64,000 nt of DNA from sequence record MZ475893.1, one strand, 5' to 3'. The translations under genes were made by a program, and so were the position numbers. This document shows positions 44,041-57,720 of this stretch, piece by piece; within the stretch, counting starts at the first letter, position 1; each line of letters starts with the position of its first letter. The notes under the pieces were generated by a model, which saw only the letters and a list, made by a program, of their open reading frames with translations, made no database searches and was not told the origin of the DNA.

Positions 44041-44085
44041 CTGGACAAAACAGCGCTTCTTAACGAGGCGCTTTTCTGCTATAAT
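44033..44085 (+). promoter_or_regulatory. early promoter (19-bp box + TGn-TATAAT)
   Basis: ACACTTAACTGGACAAAAC-N28-TATAAT. Confidence 0.75.
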
Positions 44086-49508: not shown

Positions 49509-49553
49509 CTGGACGAAATAAGGCTACTCTGCTTAGGCTGCTTATGCTATAAT
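49501..49553 (+). promoter_or_regulatory. early promoter (19-bp box + TGn-TATAAT)
   Basis: GCAAATAACTGGACGAAAT-N28-TATAAT. Confidence 0.75.
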
Positions 49554-49595
49554 ATGCGTGAGCAGTCTTTTAACTTATTCTCAAGGGAGAAACGT

Positions 49596-53248: not shown

Positions 53249-53545
53249 ATGTCTGAACAAACTCAATTGCCTGGCCAAGTCGTTATCGTTTGTGTTATGC
53301 AGGAATCTGATTCTTTCATGGGCCAAAAGTTTGATGGCTATGTGTACTTGCTCAATCCAGAACACAAAGAGATGTTTGAGCGTCACCTGCAGGCGCACAA
53401 AAGCCGTGAGAACTACTCACGCATTATCAGCCACGCTAATCACTATATAACTAGCACGGGCTTCGATGCGCTTCATGCTGCTATACGCAAAGACGCAAAC
53501 AGACCCTGGCTGTGGTCAGATACTGATTACACGATAACTGCATAA
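53249..53545 (+). CDS. hypothetical protein
   Basis: 98 aa, GAGG RBS. Confidence 0.8.
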   Translation: MSEQTQLPGQVVIVCVMQESDSFMGQKFDGYVYLLNPEHKEMFERHLQAHKSRENYSRIISHANHYITSTGFDALHAAIRKDANRPWLWSDTDYTITA

Positions 53546-53592
53546 ATCTGGACAAAATAGAGGTAGCTAGAAAAAGCTGCCCCTGATATACT
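53540..53592 (+). promoter_or_regulatory. early promoter (19-bp box + TGn-TATACT)
   Basis: GCATAAATCTGGACAAAAT-N28-TATACT. Confidence 0.8.
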
Positions 53593-53596
53593 AAAA

Positions 53597-53620
53597 GCGT
53601 AGCTTGTGCTGCGCTTTTTT
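53597..53620 (+). terminator. terminator overlapping the predicted transcription start
   Basis: gcgtagc-ttgt-gctgcgc-tttttt. Confidence 0.6.
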
Positions 53621-53645
53621 ACTTTCTGTCTGAGGAGACAACTAA

Positions 53646-54101
53646 ATGAAACCAATCAAAGCAACTGAGGCTGATAAAGCGCTTCAAAACGAATGTATGG
53701 ACGCTGTTGCTCAGTGTATCATCCTGAACACACCCGACTGGCGAGATGTAGCGATTGCAGGTTTGCGCCTGTATCTGGTTGCATCTAGTATGAGCGGCGC
53801 GGAACTTCCGTGTATGCAATTCGAACATAACGGCAAGCCGTGCCGTTTATCGTTTAAGATGAACCTTGTTGATGAAGGCGAAGAGTTCACTCCGAATGAA
53901 GTGAACCAAGCTCACCAACAAGAAATGGTCGAATGCATTCTTGCTAAGACCGAAGCGCTTGGTGGTTACAGTTACTTTGATTTGTTCGTTTGCTCAGGCC
54001 GCCTGTTTATGATTGGCTTCGACGGTATGGCCGACACCGTTCCTGCTCTGATGTTCCGCTCAGACAAAAAGAACTACCGTGTTAACTTGATCAACGGATA
54101 A
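53646..54101 (+). CDS. hypothetical protein
   Basis: 151 aa, GAGGAG RBS. Confidence 0.8.
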   Translation: MKPIKATEADKALQNECMDAVAQCIILNTPDWRDVAIAGLRLYLVASSMSGAELPCMQFEHNGKPCRLSFKMNLVDEGEEFTPNEVNQAHQQEMVECILAKTEALGGYSYFDLFVCSGRLFMIGFDGMADTVPALMFRSDKKNYRVNLING

Positions 54102-54104
54102 GCT

Positions 54105-54287
54105 GTGAAGACCACCAACGACCTGATTAAAGAATTAAAGCAACATCGTGTTATCATCATTGAAGAACACGACAAGCATATTCTGCCTGACCTGACATTC
54201 GCCCTGAGTTGCTTGTGCATCGATCATACTAAACGTGTGGTCGAAACAAAGCGTAGTGCTCAGGCAACCAAAATCAAACTCGCATGA
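54105..54287 (+). CDS. hypothetical protein
   Basis: 60 aa, GTG start. Confidence 0.55.
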   Translation: MKTTNDLIKELKQHRVIIIEEHDKHILPDLTFALSCLCIDHTKRVVETKRSAQATKIKLA

Positions 54288-54297
54288 GGAAATGATT

Positions 54298-54744
54298 ATG
54301 ACCTTCAATGAAGTCCCAACGAAAGCTCAACTCAGTCTTCTGGCTATGGCTGTTATGGCGTGCGCCGAGATTATGTGTCGCGGCCAAGAGACTGCCGCAC
54401 AAAAACAAGCTGTCGACCTGCTGTGTGCTCGATTCGGTTTGACTCTGGAAGATCTCACCCAGTTGACTAAGCTGCCTCCTGAAATCGATCAGTATGTGCA
54501 GAAAGTTATGGACGAAGGCGCTAAGCGACCTATATCTGACTTTGAGGCCAAAGCAGAGCCTGCGCCTGAATATAGTCAAGACGACCTCGATTTGATTCGC
54601 GTAGAATATGAGCCAATCGATACGTCTGTCCTGCGTCAAGGGGCTGTGAATGATGGTGTTATCACAGTGCAGCAAGCAGCCACTTTCGAGCGTGATCAGA
54701 TACTGACTGCTATTCTTGAGTACCGTCTGCGCTCAGAAGCATAA
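54298..54744 (+). CDS. hypothetical protein
   Basis: GAGGA RBS before ATG 54298. Confidence 0.8.
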   Translation: MTFNEVPTKAQLSLLAMAVMACAEIMCRGQETAAQKQAVDLLCARFGLTLEDLTQLTKLPPEIDQYVQKVMDEGAKRPISDFEAKAEPAPEYSQDDLDLIRVEYEPIDTSVLRQGAVNDGVITVQQAATFERDQILTAILEYRLRSEA

Positions 54745-54791
54745 ATCTGGACAAAATCGTGGTTGTAGCAAAAACCGTCCTATGTTATAAT
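54739..54791 (+). promoter_or_regulatory. early promoter (19-bp box, TTGTAG -35, TGn-TATAAT)
   Basis: GCATAAATCTGGACAAAAT-N28-TATAAT. Confidence 0.85.
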
Positions 54792-54797
54792 AGAGAT

Positions 54798-54930
54798 GTA
54801 GCGTAGACGTGAGGTATGCGCTATAAATTGAATGACGCGTTTTTGCTTGACTGTAAGGTAGCGGTATCTTACAGTCCTTTTTCAAGTGGCTTCGAAGTTT
54901 GAGGCTTCTTGCGAAAGGTCAAATGTACCT
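54798..54930 (+). ncRNA. putative structured small RNA or leader, copy A
   Basis: Promoter-proximal, no RBS-supported ORF; stem gactgtaag/cttacagtc followed by cttttt.aagtg; paralog at 55883. Confidence 0.5.
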
Positions 54931-55000
54931 TTGAGCGTTTTCGGATTTACGCGGTTTTCACCGACTGCGCTCTCACTTTAAACCGCAAAGGAAATACATC

Positions 55001-55822
55001 ATGCCAGAAGCACGCAAACCTCGCCCAGCTGATCGTTTCGCTAAAGCCCGTGCAGAGAAAAACTCACCGGAGCGTCAAGATGCGGCGGCCCAGCGCACGT
55101 ATAAAGACACTCCGCCTAAATCTGTTCAGGTGAAACTGGATGCTGTGGCAGCTTCTAAGAAGAAAGTTTCTCGCGGTCCCAAGGCATCTCGTCCGCGTCA
55201 GTCGCCTGCTGTTGACGCATCGCCAAAGCCTCGCATTCGTGATGAGGAACGTGTGTACAATCTCGTACACATGATTCTCTCTGCGTGGAAAGCCGATGCA
55301 GAAAACGCGGCAGCAAGTGTGGGAATCGTTAAAGTGTCTCGGCGTAAGATTGAGGGTGCGTTACGCGATCTCAAGAATACGCGCTTTACTAAAATCCCAG
55401 GCTTAATCAATGACGTGCTTGTCTACAATGAACTGGTAGCTGAGTTCGGGCAGTGGGTGTACGTCGAGCACGACAGTCCTGATTGGATTTTTGTGCGCCT
55501 GCCTGAAAACAGCACGCCTGTGATTCGCGCTGACATTAGCTATGCCAAGACGGGTGAAACTTCCACGTCTGTTTCGACTTCTAGTGAAGTTCTGCTGAAA
55601 GATCTTAGCGAAGACGAAGAAGATGAGATCCCCGAGAATGTCGAGTACGACGATGCGGACGAGACTGACGAAGACGAAGAGGAGCCGTATGACTACAGCG
55701 CTTGGTCTCTGCGTGACCTGCAGGATTATGCAAAGCGCTATGACTTCCTGCAGCCCGACACTGAGGGGTTCGATGATCGCGAGAAGTTGATAGCAGCCAT
55801 CGAGCTGGGGGAACAGCACTAA
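55001..55822 (+). CDS. basic-N/acidic-C protein with C-terminal HeH motif
   Basis: 273 aa, AAGGA RBS; ends YSAWSLRDLQDYAKRY...REKLIAAIE. Confidence 0.85.
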   Translation: MPEARKPRPADRFAKARAEKNSPERQDAAAQRTYKDTPPKSVQVKLDAVAASKKKVSRGPKASRPRQSPAVDASPKPRIRDEERVYNLVHMILSAWKADAENAAASVGIVKVSRRKIEGALRDLKNTRFTKIPGLINDVLVYNELVAEFGQWVYVEHDSPDWIFVRLPENSTPVIRADISYAKTGETSTSVSTSSEVLLKDLSEDEEDEIPENVEYDDADETDEDEEEPYDYSAWSLRDLQDYAKRYDFLQPDTEGFDDREKLIAAIELGEQH

Positions 55823-55876
55823 GCACAAATATGGACAAAATAGTGGTAGCATCTAAAGCATGACCTGTGCTACACT
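55823..55876 (+). promoter_or_regulatory. early promoter (19-bp box + TGn-TACACT) driving no ORF
   Basis: GCACAAATATGGACAAAAT-N29-TACACT. Confidence 0.75.
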
Positions 55877-55882
55877 ATAGAT

Positions 55883-55970
55883 CGAATGCCTTGTAGTTTT
55901 TTGACTGTGAGTTACTTTCCGGCTCACAGTCCTTTTTAAAGTGCTCTCCCAAGAACGCTTTAAAAAGCAC
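55883..55970 (+). ncRNA. putative structured small RNA, copy B
   Basis: Between two promoters, no ORF; stem gactgtgag/ctcacagtc followed by cttttt.aagtg. Confidence 0.55.
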
Positions 55971-55995
55971 AGACTGCCTGCGCTTTTGATAGACA

Positions 55996-56048
55996 GCATA
56001 AATCTGGACAAAATCATGGTTGTATCAGAATGCTGCCTGTCATACACT
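55996..56048 (+). promoter_or_regulatory. early promoter (19-bp box, TTGTAT -35, TACACT)
   Basis: GCATAAATCTGGACAAAAT-N28-TACACT. Confidence 0.8.
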
Positions 56049-56109
56049 TTAATGAGTCGAGCAATAGTGCTCGCAACAAACTAAATCCCAATACTGAGGA
56101 GTATTACAC

Positions 56110-57720
56110 ATGGCACGTTTCGAAACTAACACTAATCTGGTTGGCAAAACTATCGTCCTGCTGAACGGCACCAAAGCGAAGATTGAAGACGCTATCGTTT
56201 CTGGCTACAAAGTGAAAGGCCAGACCAAGCGCATCGCAACCCGTGACGTCATCAAAGAGGGTGCGCACTTTAAAGAAATCGAGCGCACGCCGCTGAGCCA
56301 GCTGGAAGATACTGGCGAAGGTTATGTGAAGTTGAAAGAAGCCAAAGCCGCTTCTAAGAAAGCGCCTGCGAAAGACGCGAAAGCTACTGGCAAAAAAGCT
56401 GCGGCAAAAGACAAGCCTGCTAAGACCAGCAAAAAAGCTGCCGCTAAAGATAAGCCAGCGAAAGAGCAAGAGCCGAAAGTTCGTCGTAAGTCTGCGAAAG
56501 AGCAGGGCAACGATTATCAGGAACTCGCGCAGGCTATCATCAAAGGCGGTCGCCGTGCAGCGCCAGTTGAAATTGACAGCGTGGACGAAGCGCTGACCGA
56601 TGCAATCGCTAAGCGTCTGACCGCTGTTGTCGAATCGTCTGAGATTGCGAAACTCGCCGCTGATAACAAAACGCCGATCGCTAACGCACTGACCGTAACT
56701 TACGGTGCTGAGTTTGCGACTGATGCAAACGTTGTGCAGATTACGCTGAACCTGCAATACGCTAAGCCGACTGCCGTTGAGTCTGCCGCTCCTACTCTGG
56801 AGAATGCCGAAGCAATCGCAATGCGTGCTGCTAAAATGGCCGCACCTAAAGTGAGCGCTAAACTCAAGAAGGCGGTGCGTGAAGCGTTCGACATTGAAAC
56901 AGACCTTGAGCTGGGTACTGTGATTATGTCAGGCGATGATCAATTCGCTTACTACGGCGAAAGCGCGAAGCACGCTGGCAAAGCGCTGCTGTACGTTGTC
57001 GAAACTGACAAGTTCAAATCTGTCCTGGCCTCTACTCTGACCGACTACGAACTGCCTGCTGATGAAGAAGCTGAGGCAGAAGAAGCTGAGGCAGAAGAAG
57101 AAGAGGAAGAAGAAGAAGAGGAAGAAGAAGAAGAAGCCGCTGATGACTTCGACGACGAAGAGGAAGAAGATGCGGACGATGCAGATGATGCCGACGATGC
57201 TGATGGCGACGACGACGAATTCCAGTACGTTGCTGTAGGCGATGAACACTTTGCTCTGGTCAACAAAAAGATCACAGCCAAGTATCACGATGCACTGGCT
57301 GAGCAATTCGGCGTTAGCACCGAAGCGCTGGTCCCAGGCTTAGTGTTGACCAACGGCGAGATCACTTTCGCTTATCTGGGCAACGATAGCAAAGGCGGCC
57401 TGCTCGTTATCGACCTCGACGACGATGCGGACGAAGACGACAACGTTCTGGTCTACCCGAAAGCAGACGTCAAATCACTGACCGACTTCTCTCCTGTGCT
57501 GGGTGATGCAGATGAAGAAGACGCAGACGATGCAGAAGAGACCGACGAAGAAGACGAAGATCAGGACGACGACTTCGAATTTGACGATGCGCCAACTGCT
57601 GACCTCGAAGACCTGTCTGACGATGAACTGCGTGACCGCGCTGTTGAGATGGGCCTGACCACTGTACGCAAAGCTGACAAAATGAACGCCAAGCAACTGC
57701 GTGCGCTGCTGTCTGAATAA
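56110..57720 (+). CDS. modular protein: N-terminal beta domain, histone-H1-like K/A linker, duplicated domain, acidic tracts, C-terminal Rho-N-like HeH
   Basis: 536 aa, GAGGAG RBS, strong expression codon bias; internal repeat K.(S/T)AK...A..E.F...T..L..G.V...G...FAY.G...LTD. Confidence 0.9.
   Translation: MARFETNTNLVGKTIVLLNGTKAKIEDAIVSGYKVKGQTKRIATRDVIKEGAHFKEIERTPLSQLEDTGEGYVKLKEAKAASKKAPAKDAKATGKKAAAKDKPAKTSKKAAAKDKPAKEQEPKVRRKSAKEQGNDYQELAQAIIKGGRRAAPVEIDSVDEALTDAIAKRLTAVVESSEIAKLAADNKTPIANALTVTYGAEFATDANVVQITLNLQYAKPTAVESAAPTLENAEAIAMRAAKMAAPKVSAKLKKAVREAFDIETDLELGTVIMSGDDQFAYYGESAKHAGKALLYVVETDKFKSVLASTLTDYELPADEEAEAEEAEAEEEEEEEEEEEEEEAADDFDDEEEEDADDADDADDADGDDDEFQYVAVGDEHFALVNKKITAKYHDALAEQFGVSTEALVPGLVLTNGEITFAYLGNDSKGGLLVIDLDDDADEDDNVLVYPKADVKSLTDFSPVLGDADEEDADDAEETDEEDEDQDDDFEFDDAPTADLEDLSDDELRDRAVEMGLTTVRKADKMNAKQLRALLSE

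Follow-up and report, generated by a model that had tools for sequence, protein, structure and literature searches.

The two related hairpin modules at 54849-54888 (copy A) and 55903-55943 (copy B) are probably intrinsic terminator or attenuator modules of a composite early cassette that lies in a hyperplastic region of a phage genome. Most likely they represent copies of one promoter-proximal terminator module rather than two dedicated small-RNA genes. The stretch of DNA analyzed (the window; 64,000 nucleotides of record MZ475893.1) corresponds to genome positions 186001-250000 of the Erwinia jumbo phage pEa_SNUABM_45, whose whole genome amounts to 264 kb and whose record, in the stretches read, carries "hypothetical protein" as the annotation of nearly every gene. 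The phage is an unclassified member of the Caudoviricetes and its relatives belong to Alexandravirus, Rivsvirus and Yoloswagvirus. In the genome paper of phage PaBG, the phage group was described with a sigma factor gene (PMC7412058), and the phages studied here presumably make use of the core RNA polymerase of the host.

Both copies are present, their sequences agree with the preliminary description, and they are paralogous, with stems that differ by one compensated pair (A-U in copy A, G-C in copy B). The pattern GACTGTRAG-N8-14-CTYACAGTCCTTTTT occurred twice in the window and not once in 100 shuffles, and the same numbers were obtained with a 19-mer around the U-tract. When the whole 264-kb genome was searched for further copies with a covariance model, only copies A and B were obtained. 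Each copy consists of a hairpin of 9-12 bp (H1; about -15 kcal/mol), a C and five U residues, followed by a second hairpin (H2) for which the U-tract doubles as the 5' arm.

54849..54882, plus strand: copy A H1 with C and U5, terminator-like; 12-bp hairpin 54849-54876 (-15.8 kcal/mol), C 54877, U5 54878-54882
54877..54917, plus strand: copy A H2; 5' arm CUUUUUCAAG, which includes the U-tract, an inner hairpin and 3' arm CUUGCGAAAG
55903..55937, plus strand: copy B H1 with C and U5; 11-bp hairpin 55903-55931 (-15.7 kcal/mol), C 55932, U5 55933-55937
55932..55967, plus strand: copy B H2; 12-bp stem of CUUUUUAAAGUG with CGCUUUAAAAAG

The energies given are those of H1 folded alone and correspond to z values of about -5.5. 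An intrinsic terminator is expected to show a U-tract within 0-2 nt of its hairpin, and here a spacer of 1 nt precedes U5; a standard terminator scan selected both H1 sites. Free energies of H1 range from -15 to -18 kcal/mol across all lineages, and H1 is at least as stable as the canonical terminators of the genome (GGGTGGC-UUCG-GCTGCCC-CUUUUU, -10.6 kcal/mol). The U-tract has only five U residues after the C and the efficiency of termination is therefore uncertain.

The earlier proposal of a real, selected RNA structure in both copies is borne out by covariation in relatives. Among 17 sequences, compensatory changes were encountered at 8 of the 9 H1 pairs, the U-tract and the H2 arms being fixed, and the partners of H1 can pair in 94.5% of cells as compared to 32-63% when they are slid against each other. 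The pairing of the U-tract into H2, also put forward before, was found by folding in both copies and its helix covaries in relatives: the middle pair of H2 changes from C-G to A-U in 5/17 sequences and the inner stem covaries as well. The H1 stems of pEa_SNUABM_5 and Yoloswag are unrelated in sequence and occupy the same place. A structure that is kept and a U-tract that is conserved, with a stem sequence that drifts, is what would be expected for a terminator.

These substitutions also bear on the idea that the DNA itself is the functional element, be it as a recombination hot spot, as a protein operator formed by the inverted arms CTTTTTAAAG / CTTTAAAAAG or as a promoter-primed replication origin, with RNA structure being incidental. 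The H2 arms are indeed invariant inverted repeats, deletions terminate within these hairpins and mosaic break points occur inside the leader of copy A, as in pEa_SNUABM_13, whose leader switches to Alexandra-type sequence from a third hairpin (H3) onward; moreover, the promoter-early stem-loop (PeSL) cassettes of T4-type phages have been proposed as recombination sites (PMC2839356). However, the compensatory changes in H1, in the inner stem of H2 and in H3 indicate selection on a folded single strand, the spacing of the H2 arms varies by 16-22 nt, unlike that of an operator, and recombination at repeats is compatible with a terminator role instead of being an alternative to it. We consider a function at the DNA level very unlikely.

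Strong conservation of the H2 arms, the location of modules between transcription units, and the fact that H1 and H2 abut without spacer, so that stacking could give a helix of about 25 bp, would suit a signal for RNA processing or stability. In the early region of T7, RNA processing separates the messages and protective hairpins remain. The twin hairpin might similarly contain an RNase III site (in H2 alone, 16-20 bp, or in H2 stacked on H1) or an RNase E site in the AU-rich tract, and cutting would part upstream from downstream messages and leave protective hairpins behind. Yet a stable hairpin with an invariant U5 immediately behind it is the mark of termination and not of RNase III sites, the length and the inner part of H2 vary, six sequences have a U-C mismatch in the stem, and no sequence match to known processing sites was detected. 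Processing is thus a rather improbable explanation.

Terminators fit better because of where the modules reside in relatives. In front of promoter P_C (see below), at the position of copy B, pEa_SNUABM_5 contains two tandem hairpin-plus-U modules with no promoter ahead of them. In Yoloswag, one module immediately follows the stop codon of gene 309 and precedes the promoter and two more are arranged in tandem in the leader, and Alexandra carries a twin hairpin of the same design, again without promoter, between genes 326 and 327. The preliminary description had named "merely duplicated ordinary terminators" as the outcome that would overturn it, and given the position after a stop codon in Yoloswag and the lack of a promoter in pEa_SNUABM_5 this is largely what was encountered, although the conserved H2 and a leader of 205 nt exceed an ordinary terminator.

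The same positions speak against a cis-acting element of processive antitermination or pausing that makes transcription resist downstream terminators. The antitermination RNAs putL and putR of phage HK022 consist of two adjacent stem-loops downstream of early promoters, and here, too, paralogous pairs of adjacent stem-loops are located just after putative early promoters and have stems kept by covariation. But put is not known to include a U5 tract at the base of its first hairpin, one Yoloswag copy and the pEa_SNUABM_5 copies occur at gene ends, only another promoter is available to read into beyond copy B, and Rfam gave no match at all. A put-like role therefore appears highly improbable.

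Both copies had been placed behind a "strong early" promoter; a conserved sigma-70-like motif is indeed present upstream of each, CTGGACAAAAT ... TGnTAnAnT, with -10 elements at 54786-54791 and 55871-55876, whereas "strong" and "early" are deduced from sequence only. Within the window, exact TGGACAAAAT was found at 4 positions, all of them intergenic and on the plus strand, and with one mismatch at 12 sites where 4.6 were expected. Altogether, six promoter cassettes, all intergenic, on the plus strand and with CTGGACAAAAT and an extended -10 element TGnTAnAnT, are crowded within 12 kb of the 264-kb genome.

44041..44085, plus strand: sister cassette; hairpin and T-tract between the upstream motif and -10
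49509..49575, plus strand: sister cassette; hairpin across -10, then TTTT
53541..53624, plus strand: sister cassette; TGGACAAAAT 53549-53558, TGaTATACT 53584-53592, hairpin and U6 53593-53624
54741..54791, plus strand: predicted promoter P_A; CTGGACAAAAT 54747-54757, weak -35 element TTGTAG 54763-54768, 17-nt spacer, extended -10 element TGtTATAAT 54783-54791
55826..55876, plus strand: predicted promoter P_B; TGGACAAAAT 55832-55841, extended -10 element TGcTACACT 55868-55876
55996..56073, plus strand: predicted promoter P_C with 5' hairpin; TGGACAAAAT 56005-56014, -10 element TACACT 56043-56048

Transcription is predicted to start at about 54796-54798 for P_A and at about 55881-55885 for P_B. 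The P_A motif is kept at the orthologous place in all relatives. P_C serves a gene at 56110 for an acidic protein of 536 aa and its 5' hairpin (56058-56073) is devoid of a U-tract. A hairpin plus T-tract accompanies 5 of the 6 conserved sigma-70-like promoter cassettes in the window, at variable positions: in the interval between motif and -10 (44041), across -10 (49509), at +1 (53548), at about +52 (copy A) or at about +20 (copy B); in the cassette at 53541..53624 the hairpin begins at the predicted transcription start. The genes near the cassettes belong to no family or only to PHROGs without known function, and depending on the phage 0 to 3 genes lie between the leader and P_C.

Copy A is located about 50 nt inside a structured leader of about 205 nt ahead of an early gene, which is conserved in Alexandravirus, Rivsvirus and Yoloswagvirus.

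54797..54825, plus strand: 5'-terminal hairpin of the copy A leader, obtained by folding
54914..54932, plus strand: H3 hairpin, AAAGGU / ACCUUU; its 5' arm includes the final four bases of the 3' arm of H2
54933..54992, plus strand: 3' half of the leader; long hairpin P4/P5 54933-54972, possible pseudoknot, Shine-Dalgarno sequence AAGGA 54988-54992
55001..55822, plus strand: conserved early gene for a protein of 273 aa with basic N-terminus, conserved core and acidic tail

Relatives keep a hairpin of different sequence at the 5' end of the leader, where copy B has none. P4/P5 shows compensatory changes at 5 pairs. A pseudoknot between GCGGUUU (54951-54957) and AAACCGC (54980-54986) is possible but unproven, the two segments being 100% pairable yet invariant. 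The only mutually exclusive pairing in the leader is that of the H2 3' arm against the H3 5' arm, and covariation cannot decide between pairing of the U-tract with the A-tract and a full-length H3, since in both contested segments changes are either absent or confined to one side. Copy A has the position required of an attenuator, between a transcription start (as predicted from the -10 element) and a start codon, and the suggestion of an attenuator gating the gene at 55001 is close to the reading that we prefer. Neither minimum-energy nor consensus folds contained an antiterminator pairing against H1, and no candidate regulator was found. For the 273-aa protein, there was no Pfam match above the curated cut-off, only a sub-threshold one to Ish1/HeH, and no sequence match in PHROG, NCBIfam or PDB. 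Its AlphaFold model, built from 7 sequences, is weak (pLDDT 63); in Foldseek the best match of the model had E = 0.48 and most top matches were winged-helix domains, which gives no more than a hint.

In the public record of pEa_SNUABM_13, the stretch orthologous to copy A is annotated as tRNA-Glu (anticodon ttc), and ARAGORN does predict a 95-nt tRNA-Glu there; furthermore, the H3 loop is T-arm-like (GGGUUCGAUACCC) in most relatives, where H3 as a whole contains a perfect T-arm-like sequence. We nevertheless reject a tRNA or tRNA-like gene on sequence grounds and attribute practically no probability to it. ARAGORN made no call in the window, the "anticodon" of pEa_SNUABM_13 falls inside the terminator U-tract and its "acceptor" is mismatched, no Rfam tRNA match appeared even at E = 5, and the T-like loop has disappeared from the window copy and from phB78 and pEa_SNUABM_30, all of which retain the stem. 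More generally, Rfam returned nothing at gathering thresholds for the whole window or at E up to 5 for 53400-56200, and for the Alexandra locus only two sub-threshold chance matches (STAXI and mir-218).

Copy B is a truncated leader without gene and is present in the nine closest relatives only. It includes a further element:

55963..55987, plus strand: third, weak hairpin of unit B, AAAAGC.CAG / CUG.GCUUUU, -9.2 kcal/mol

The 3' arm of this hairpin ends in U4, its A-tract overlaps the 3' arm of H2, and its 3' arm has CTGCCTGC in common with the hairpin ahead of P_C in Alexandra. As stated previously, no credible ORF separates copy B from the next promoter at 56005; the frames present are a 17-codon ATG frame without Shine-Dalgarno sequence and a GTG frame of 47 aa that crosses this promoter. 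The 17-codon frame was considered as a leader peptide (ATG 55886, stop codon TAA in the U-tract) and discarded, as it has no Shine-Dalgarno sequence and, by eye, is broken in Alexandra and AD1. A frame similar to it was noticed in pEa_SNUABM_1. A second, independent gene-less leader exists in phB78 and pEa_SNUABM_30. Gene-less units of promoter and hairpin precede P_C in the pEa_SNUABM_45 group, in phB78/pEa_SNUABM_30 and in Yoloswag, three lineages altogether. In a scan of IMG/VR, the 16-mer of the leader gave mostly chance matches and known isolates, and the exact H2 arms were restricted to this phage group and four other contigs; an unrelated 25.6-kb IMG/VR contig with the same twin-hairpin design is probably a coincidence.

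Alternatively, the short RNAs themselves (about 85 nt for A, about 55 nt for B) might be the product, as trans-acting sRNAs or protein decoys formed in bulk early in infection, with termination as the means of their production. The architecture matches an sRNA gene, each unit having its own promoter, a 5' hairpin in the case of A, a single-stranded stretch and a hairpin terminator with U-tail; no gene belongs to unit B, units of this gene-less kind have been retained in three lineages, and abundant short RNAs derived from 5' UTRs of other phages have been proposed as regulators (PMC10914365). We consider this reading unlikely. The loops and the single-stranded region show no conservation among phages with a common host, H1 was replaced wholesale in pEa_SNUABM_5 and Yoloswag, and at the position of copy B pEa_SNUABM_5 has hairpins without promoter. 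For Hfq-type sRNAs a promoter of their own and a terminator with a long U-tail are expected; the units have both elements, the U-tail measuring only 5 nt. Variable loops as guide or seed sequences, as proposed initially, did not hold up: the loop of copy B, UUACUUUCCGG, is the homologue of the Alexandra-type leader loop UUUUCCCGG, and in pEa_SNUABM_5 and Yoloswag the whole hairpin is unrelated in sequence. A single-stranded seed 5' of H1 was not conserved either but fell into several unrelated sequence classes. A search of the phage genome for antisense targets yielded complements of 12-13 nt at most, with about 12 nt expected by chance, and the 13-mer complement sits within a coding region and not at a ribosome-binding site.

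In the terminator reading that we favor, a cassette would be composed of a sigma-70-type promoter followed by the twin-hairpin module, in which H1 with C-U5 would act as a leaky intrinsic terminator for host RNA polymerase. Most transcripts from P_A would end at H1 as leader RNAs of about 85 nt, and some would continue into the gene. In the read-through RNA the AU-rich U-tract would be absorbed into H2, which may have a protective role, and the leader would continue with H3, the long hairpin and the possible pseudoknot beside the ribosome-binding site. Copy B would be a truncated duplicate of such a leader, reduced to the promoter, the hairpins H1 and H2 and a weak third hairpin, and devoid of ribosome-binding site and gene; it probably arose by recombination or deletion between repeated cassettes. 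It would halt upstream transcription before P_C, where relatives carry terminators, and a short RNA, about 55 nt and at most about 105 nt in length, would be released as by-product. We infer promoter activity, termination and its leakiness from the features described above. A terminator in the leader of its own gene must either leak or be regulated. Plain termination also fails to account for the stronger conservation, relative to H1, of the H2 arms, of H3 and of the leader's 3' half. Gene-less units in three lineages could reflect selection on the short RNA itself or on the firing of a promoter there. With low probability, the leader of about 205 nt, from its 5' hairpin to the possible pseudoknot at the ribosome-binding site, might constitute a new class of cis-regulatory RNA in Alexandra-, Rivs- and Yoloswag-like jumbo phages, in which a phage or host factor would actively control read-through at H1; the gene-less units (copy B and those of phB78/pEa_SNUABM_30 and Yoloswag) would then have been kept since their short RNAs act in trans, for example by titrating this factor.

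These phages are applied against fire blight, and for this poorly annotated group of jumbo phages the present analysis offers a first sequence-level map of early-region punctuation. A tRNA annotation and a CDS in public records are likely to be false, and two precise and inexpensive predictions follow for transcript mapping, namely RNAs of about 55 nt and of about 85 nt in addition to read-through mRNA, if any. The idea behind PeSLs, promoter-terminator cassettes that serve both as regulatory punctuation and as recombination substrates, is carried beyond T4-type phages. If the short RNAs or the conserved leader were regulated, a tractable new phage attenuator would be at hand.

Among known systems, HK022 putL and putR share with copies A and B the two adjacent stem-loops past an early promoter, the paralogy and the covarying stems, but the resemblance is superficial; in our case a U-tract terminator signature lies between the hairpins and some copies occur at gene ends. 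In the late-gene attenuator pR'-tR' of phage lambda (6S RNA), a constitutive promoter directs transcription into a nearby intrinsic terminator, giving a short RNA, and lambda possesses the dedicated antiterminator Q and its binding site. Expression beyond the terminator depends on read-through in lambda and is predicted to do so here; in contrast to lambda, no Q-like factor or site was identified, and nothing follows beyond unit B. A further parallel is given by the 42 terminators in phage 5' UTRs that produce abundant short RNAs and read-through (Putzeys et al., 2024; PMC10914365), such as T102 of phiKZ, where >90% of transcripts stop prematurely and a 71-nt RNA is formed (PMC10914365). As in those cases, the terminator is a few tens of nt behind a phage promoter, a common 5' end is predicted for the short RNA and the read-through mRNA, and the leader is conserved within and between genera; those terminators were, however, mapped by transcripts in Pseudomonas phages, whereas ours are predicted from sequence and have no sequence relation to them.

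The organization is also similar to that of PeSLs, described in T4-type phages by Arbiol et al. (2010; PMC2839356) and Comeau et al. (2014; PMC4122927), for which a stem-loop at varying position relative to the promoter is the defining pattern (PMC2839356). At the sequence level, the cassettes of pEa_SNUABM_45 show the same pattern: they are repeated and intergenic, combine a sigma-70-like early promoter that is A/T-rich upstream with a stem-loop terminator, vary in the position of the stem-loop relative to the promoter, and cluster among small genes without known function, the gene content between cassettes differing in close relatives. Differences are that they belong to Alexandravirus-like jumbo phages, that their promoter motif CTGGACAAAAT ... 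TGnTAnAnT deviates from the published PeSL consensus, that the stem-loops of copies A and B are placed 20-50 nt into the transcript and are followed by a conserved second hairpin which absorbs the U-tract, and that copy A is part of a conserved leader. We therefore regard these cassettes as an analogue of PeSLs rather than as members of that class, because the phage is not a T4-type myovirus and the motif differs from the PeSL consensus.

The two paralogous hairpin elements of the preliminary description, copy A (54849-54888) and copy B (55903-55943), could be confirmed with the sequences quoted there. Their stems differ in a single, compensated base pair, and the stem-plus-U-tract pattern, which occurs twice in the window, was obtained zero times in 100 shuffles. 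Folded alone, the first hairpin (H1) of each copy reaches about -15.8 kcal/mol (z about -5.5), and when the flanks are included each copy folds into H1 and a second hairpin, H2, that directly adjoins it (z about -4.3). Both H1 sites were selected by a simple terminator scan, and a genome-wide search with a covariance model from 17 homologues detected copy A (75 bits), copy B (54 bits) and no others. RNAs stopping at the U-tract would amount to about 85 nt (A) or about 55 nt (B), when counted from the predicted starts. No Rfam family matching the elements and no paper describing them were found.

By megablast, 54700-56110 matches Erwinia phage pEa_SNUABM_45 (MZ475893.1; 263,891 bp) with 100% identity at 240700-242110, and the window therefore corresponds to genome positions 186001-250000. 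Eight other pEa_SNUABM isolates are 97-100% identical at the locus. More distant relatives belong to Alexandravirus (Alexandra, pEa_SNUABM_1/2/3/17/28/30/32/33/35, phB78, and Dickeya phage AD1), Rivsvirus (pEa_SNUABM_5), or Yoloswagvirus. In the record stretches examined, all genes of pEa_SNUABM_45 are annotated as 'hypothetical protein' except for one thymidylate synthase, and 1.3 kb within a minus-strand gene block (genome 86608-87924; fetched stretch L008:36608-37924) carry no annotated feature.

Both copies are located downstream of a conserved promoter-like motif (CTGGACAAAAT) with a weak -35 and an extended -10, TGnTAnAnT. The whole genome contains six copies of this sequence motif, all of them intergenic and within 12 kb:
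Window 44041, + strand, promoter-like motif
Window 49509, + strand, promoter-like motif
Window 53548, + strand, promoter-like motif
Window 54747, + strand, promoter-like motif
Window 55831, + strand, promoter-like motif
Window 56004, + strand, promoter-like motif
A hairpin plus T-tract accompanies five of the six, located before, across, at or after the -10/start site. Intrinsic terminators act on host core RNA polymerase, and we infer that this enzyme transcribes these phages. For the related phage PaBG, a sigma factor gene was reported in the genome paper (PMC7412058). Outside the early cluster, a stereotyped canonical terminator is found on both strands, consisting of a GC-rich stem, a small and mostly UUCG loop, and CTTTTT, as in GGGTGGC-TTCG-GCTGCCC:
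Window 22038 (genome 208038), stereotyped GC-stem terminator
Window 39618 (genome 225618), stereotyped GC-stem terminator
Genome 19083, further copy
Genome 35895, further copy
Genome 106473, further copy
Genome 124518, further copy
Genome 133568, further copy
Genome 135329, further copy

Copy A does not stand alone. It makes up the 5' portion of an approximately 205-nt leader (predicted start about 54796, ATG 55001), and this leader is kept in front of the same early gene in every Alexandravirus as well as in pEa_SNUABM_5 and Yoloswag. The promoter is followed by a 5' hairpin, a short variable single-stranded stretch, H1, and the sequence C-U5-(A/C)AAG, which doubles as 5' arm of H2, and then by the inner hairpin and the 3' arm of H2. 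The next hairpin, H3, has a loop resembling a tRNA T-arm in most phages and its 5' arm shares four bases with the 3' arm of H2; pairing of the U-tract with the A-tract (H2) and full H3 are competing predicted folds. The 3' half (54933-54992) presents a long hairpin, P4/P5, with some covariation, and a candidate pseudoknot directly before the Shine-Dalgarno sequence, in which an invariant 7 nt of the long-hairpin loop, GCGGUUU, would pair with AAACCGC, the 7 nt immediately preceding the Shine-Dalgarno sequence.

In a MAFFT alignment of 17 sequences, both-sided changes were encountered at 8/9 pairs of H1, the mid pair of H2 changed from C-G to A-U in five sequences, and the inner stem of H2 and three inner pairs of H3 covaried as well. 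For all pairs, 94.5% of cells are pairable, compared to 32-63% when partners are slid. In P4/P5, five pairs covary. The H1 of pEa_SNUABM_5 and Yoloswag has a wholly different sequence, with place, U-tract and stability (-15 to -18 kcal/mol) unchanged. The arms of the pseudoknot are pairable in every sequence but invariant, and for this reason the pseudoknot is considered only as possible. It might permit translational control.

On the leader of pEa_SNUABM_13, GenBank lists a 95-nt tRNA-Glu(ttc) (MZ475891.1, 241695-241789; fetched stretch L002:3145-3239; window equivalent 54844-54938), and ARAGORN makes the same call in pEa_SNUABM_13 and none in the window. This tRNA is probably false, an artefact of the T-arm-like H3 (GGGTTCGATACCC), since its 'anticodon' sits in the terminator U-tract.

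In the protein encoded at 55001, the core is conserved (relatives share 56-65% identity with the window protein) and the tails are mosaic; the protein belongs to no recognisable family. A weak motif at its C-terminus (Pfam Ish1, E = 0.008, below cut-off) resembles the helix-extension-helix-like C-terminal motif of the 536-aa protein encoded at 56110-57720, which contains a very long Glu/Asp run and is conserved as PHROG 33433 (unknown function).

Copy B, with its own promoter, had been described as a unit without a gene, and indeed no credible ORF is present. A 17-codon ATG frame across its H1 (55886-55939), which stops at a TAA inside the U-tract and has a similar counterpart in pEa_SNUABM_1, was discarded as a leader peptide, as it has no Shine-Dalgarno sequence and is lost, as judged by eye, in Alexandra and AD1. 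That copies A and B are trans-acting sRNAs or decoys is possible; however, they display neither a conserved seed nor a long U-tail, and no above-chance target was found within the phage genome.

Restricted to the nine pEa_SNUABM_45-like phages, copy B can be aligned to the Alexandra-type leader over a stretch that begins shortly behind the -10 and extends through H2. It lacks the 5' hairpin, H3 and the leader 3' half, and has neither a ribosome-binding site nor the gene. At its end is a third, weak hairpin, and the 3' arm of this hairpin has CTGCCTGC in common with the Alexandra hairpin preceding P_C, the next promoter, which serves the 536-aa gene. Before P_C, the relatives contain:
Alexandra, one hairpin
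pEa_SNUABM_5, two promoter-less hairpin+U modules
Yoloswag, promoter, H2-like hairpin and H1-like hairpin
phB78 and pEa_SNUABM_30, leader 5' half fused directly to P_C, gene deleted
The base of the H1-like hairpin of Yoloswag is identical to that of the window copies (TTGACTGTG ... CACAGTCCTTTTT). Depending on the phage, zero to three genes lie between leader and P_C, and in pEa_SNUABM_13 window-type sequence switches to Alexandra-type sequence within the leader. The locus is hyperplastic, with repeated cassettes as break points.

Twin-hairpin modules also occur at other sites. In Yoloswag, one occupies a site typical of terminators, between the gene 309 stop codon, which it directly adjoins, and the promoter, and two more are arranged in tandem in the leader. 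YOLOSWAG_310 (fetched stretch L133:6382-6579), an annotated 65-aa CDS with a GTG start, is located wholly within the stretch taken up by the third module and conserved leader, and extends into the start of the following gene; the annotation is probably spurious. Genes 326 and 327 of Alexandra-type genomes are separated by a promoter-less module built in the same way:
Fetched stretch L003:1853-1995, and the corresponding site in 11 further relatives, 326/327 intergenic element, absent from the window genome
This element has a large branched first stem and ends in GGGTCCTTTTT(A/G)(A/G)AG; the U-tract is absorbed by the hairpin that comes next. In the unrelated phage IMGVR_UViG_3300045789_000617 (25.6 kb; fetched stretch L134:1540-1640), CUUUUUAAAG-hairpin-CUUUAAAAAG begins immediately after a GC hairpin, and this recurrence of the twin-hairpin layout may be coincidental or may reflect a terminator design of wider use.

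Copies A and B are best interpreted as promoter-plus-terminator cassettes. H1/U5 would act as a leaky intrinsic terminator, which in copy A would attenuate the conserved early gene and in copy B, together with the weak third hairpin, would close the upstream unit before P_C, while the promoter of copy B would release a short RNA. Simple termination leaves unexplained why H3, the leader 3' half and the arms of H2 are so strongly conserved; in mRNA that has read through, H2 might shield the AU-rich tract, and the leader 3' half might control translation. An RNase III/E processing signal, a put-like antitermination element or a role at the DNA level each have some anatomical appeal and are less well supported than the promoter-plus-terminator cassette.

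Such cassettes are analogous to the promoter-early stem-loop (PeSL) cassettes of T4-type phages (PMC2839356; PMC4122927). The behaviour predicted for copies A and B has a precedent, as transcript mapping in Pseudomonas phages revealed that 5' UTR terminators commonly occur and give rise to abundant short RNAs, T102 of phiKZ being one of them (PMC10914365). A promoter-proximal terminator or PeSL-like cassette is a known kind of element, and the twin-hairpin design and the conserved 205-nt leader are a new variant of it.
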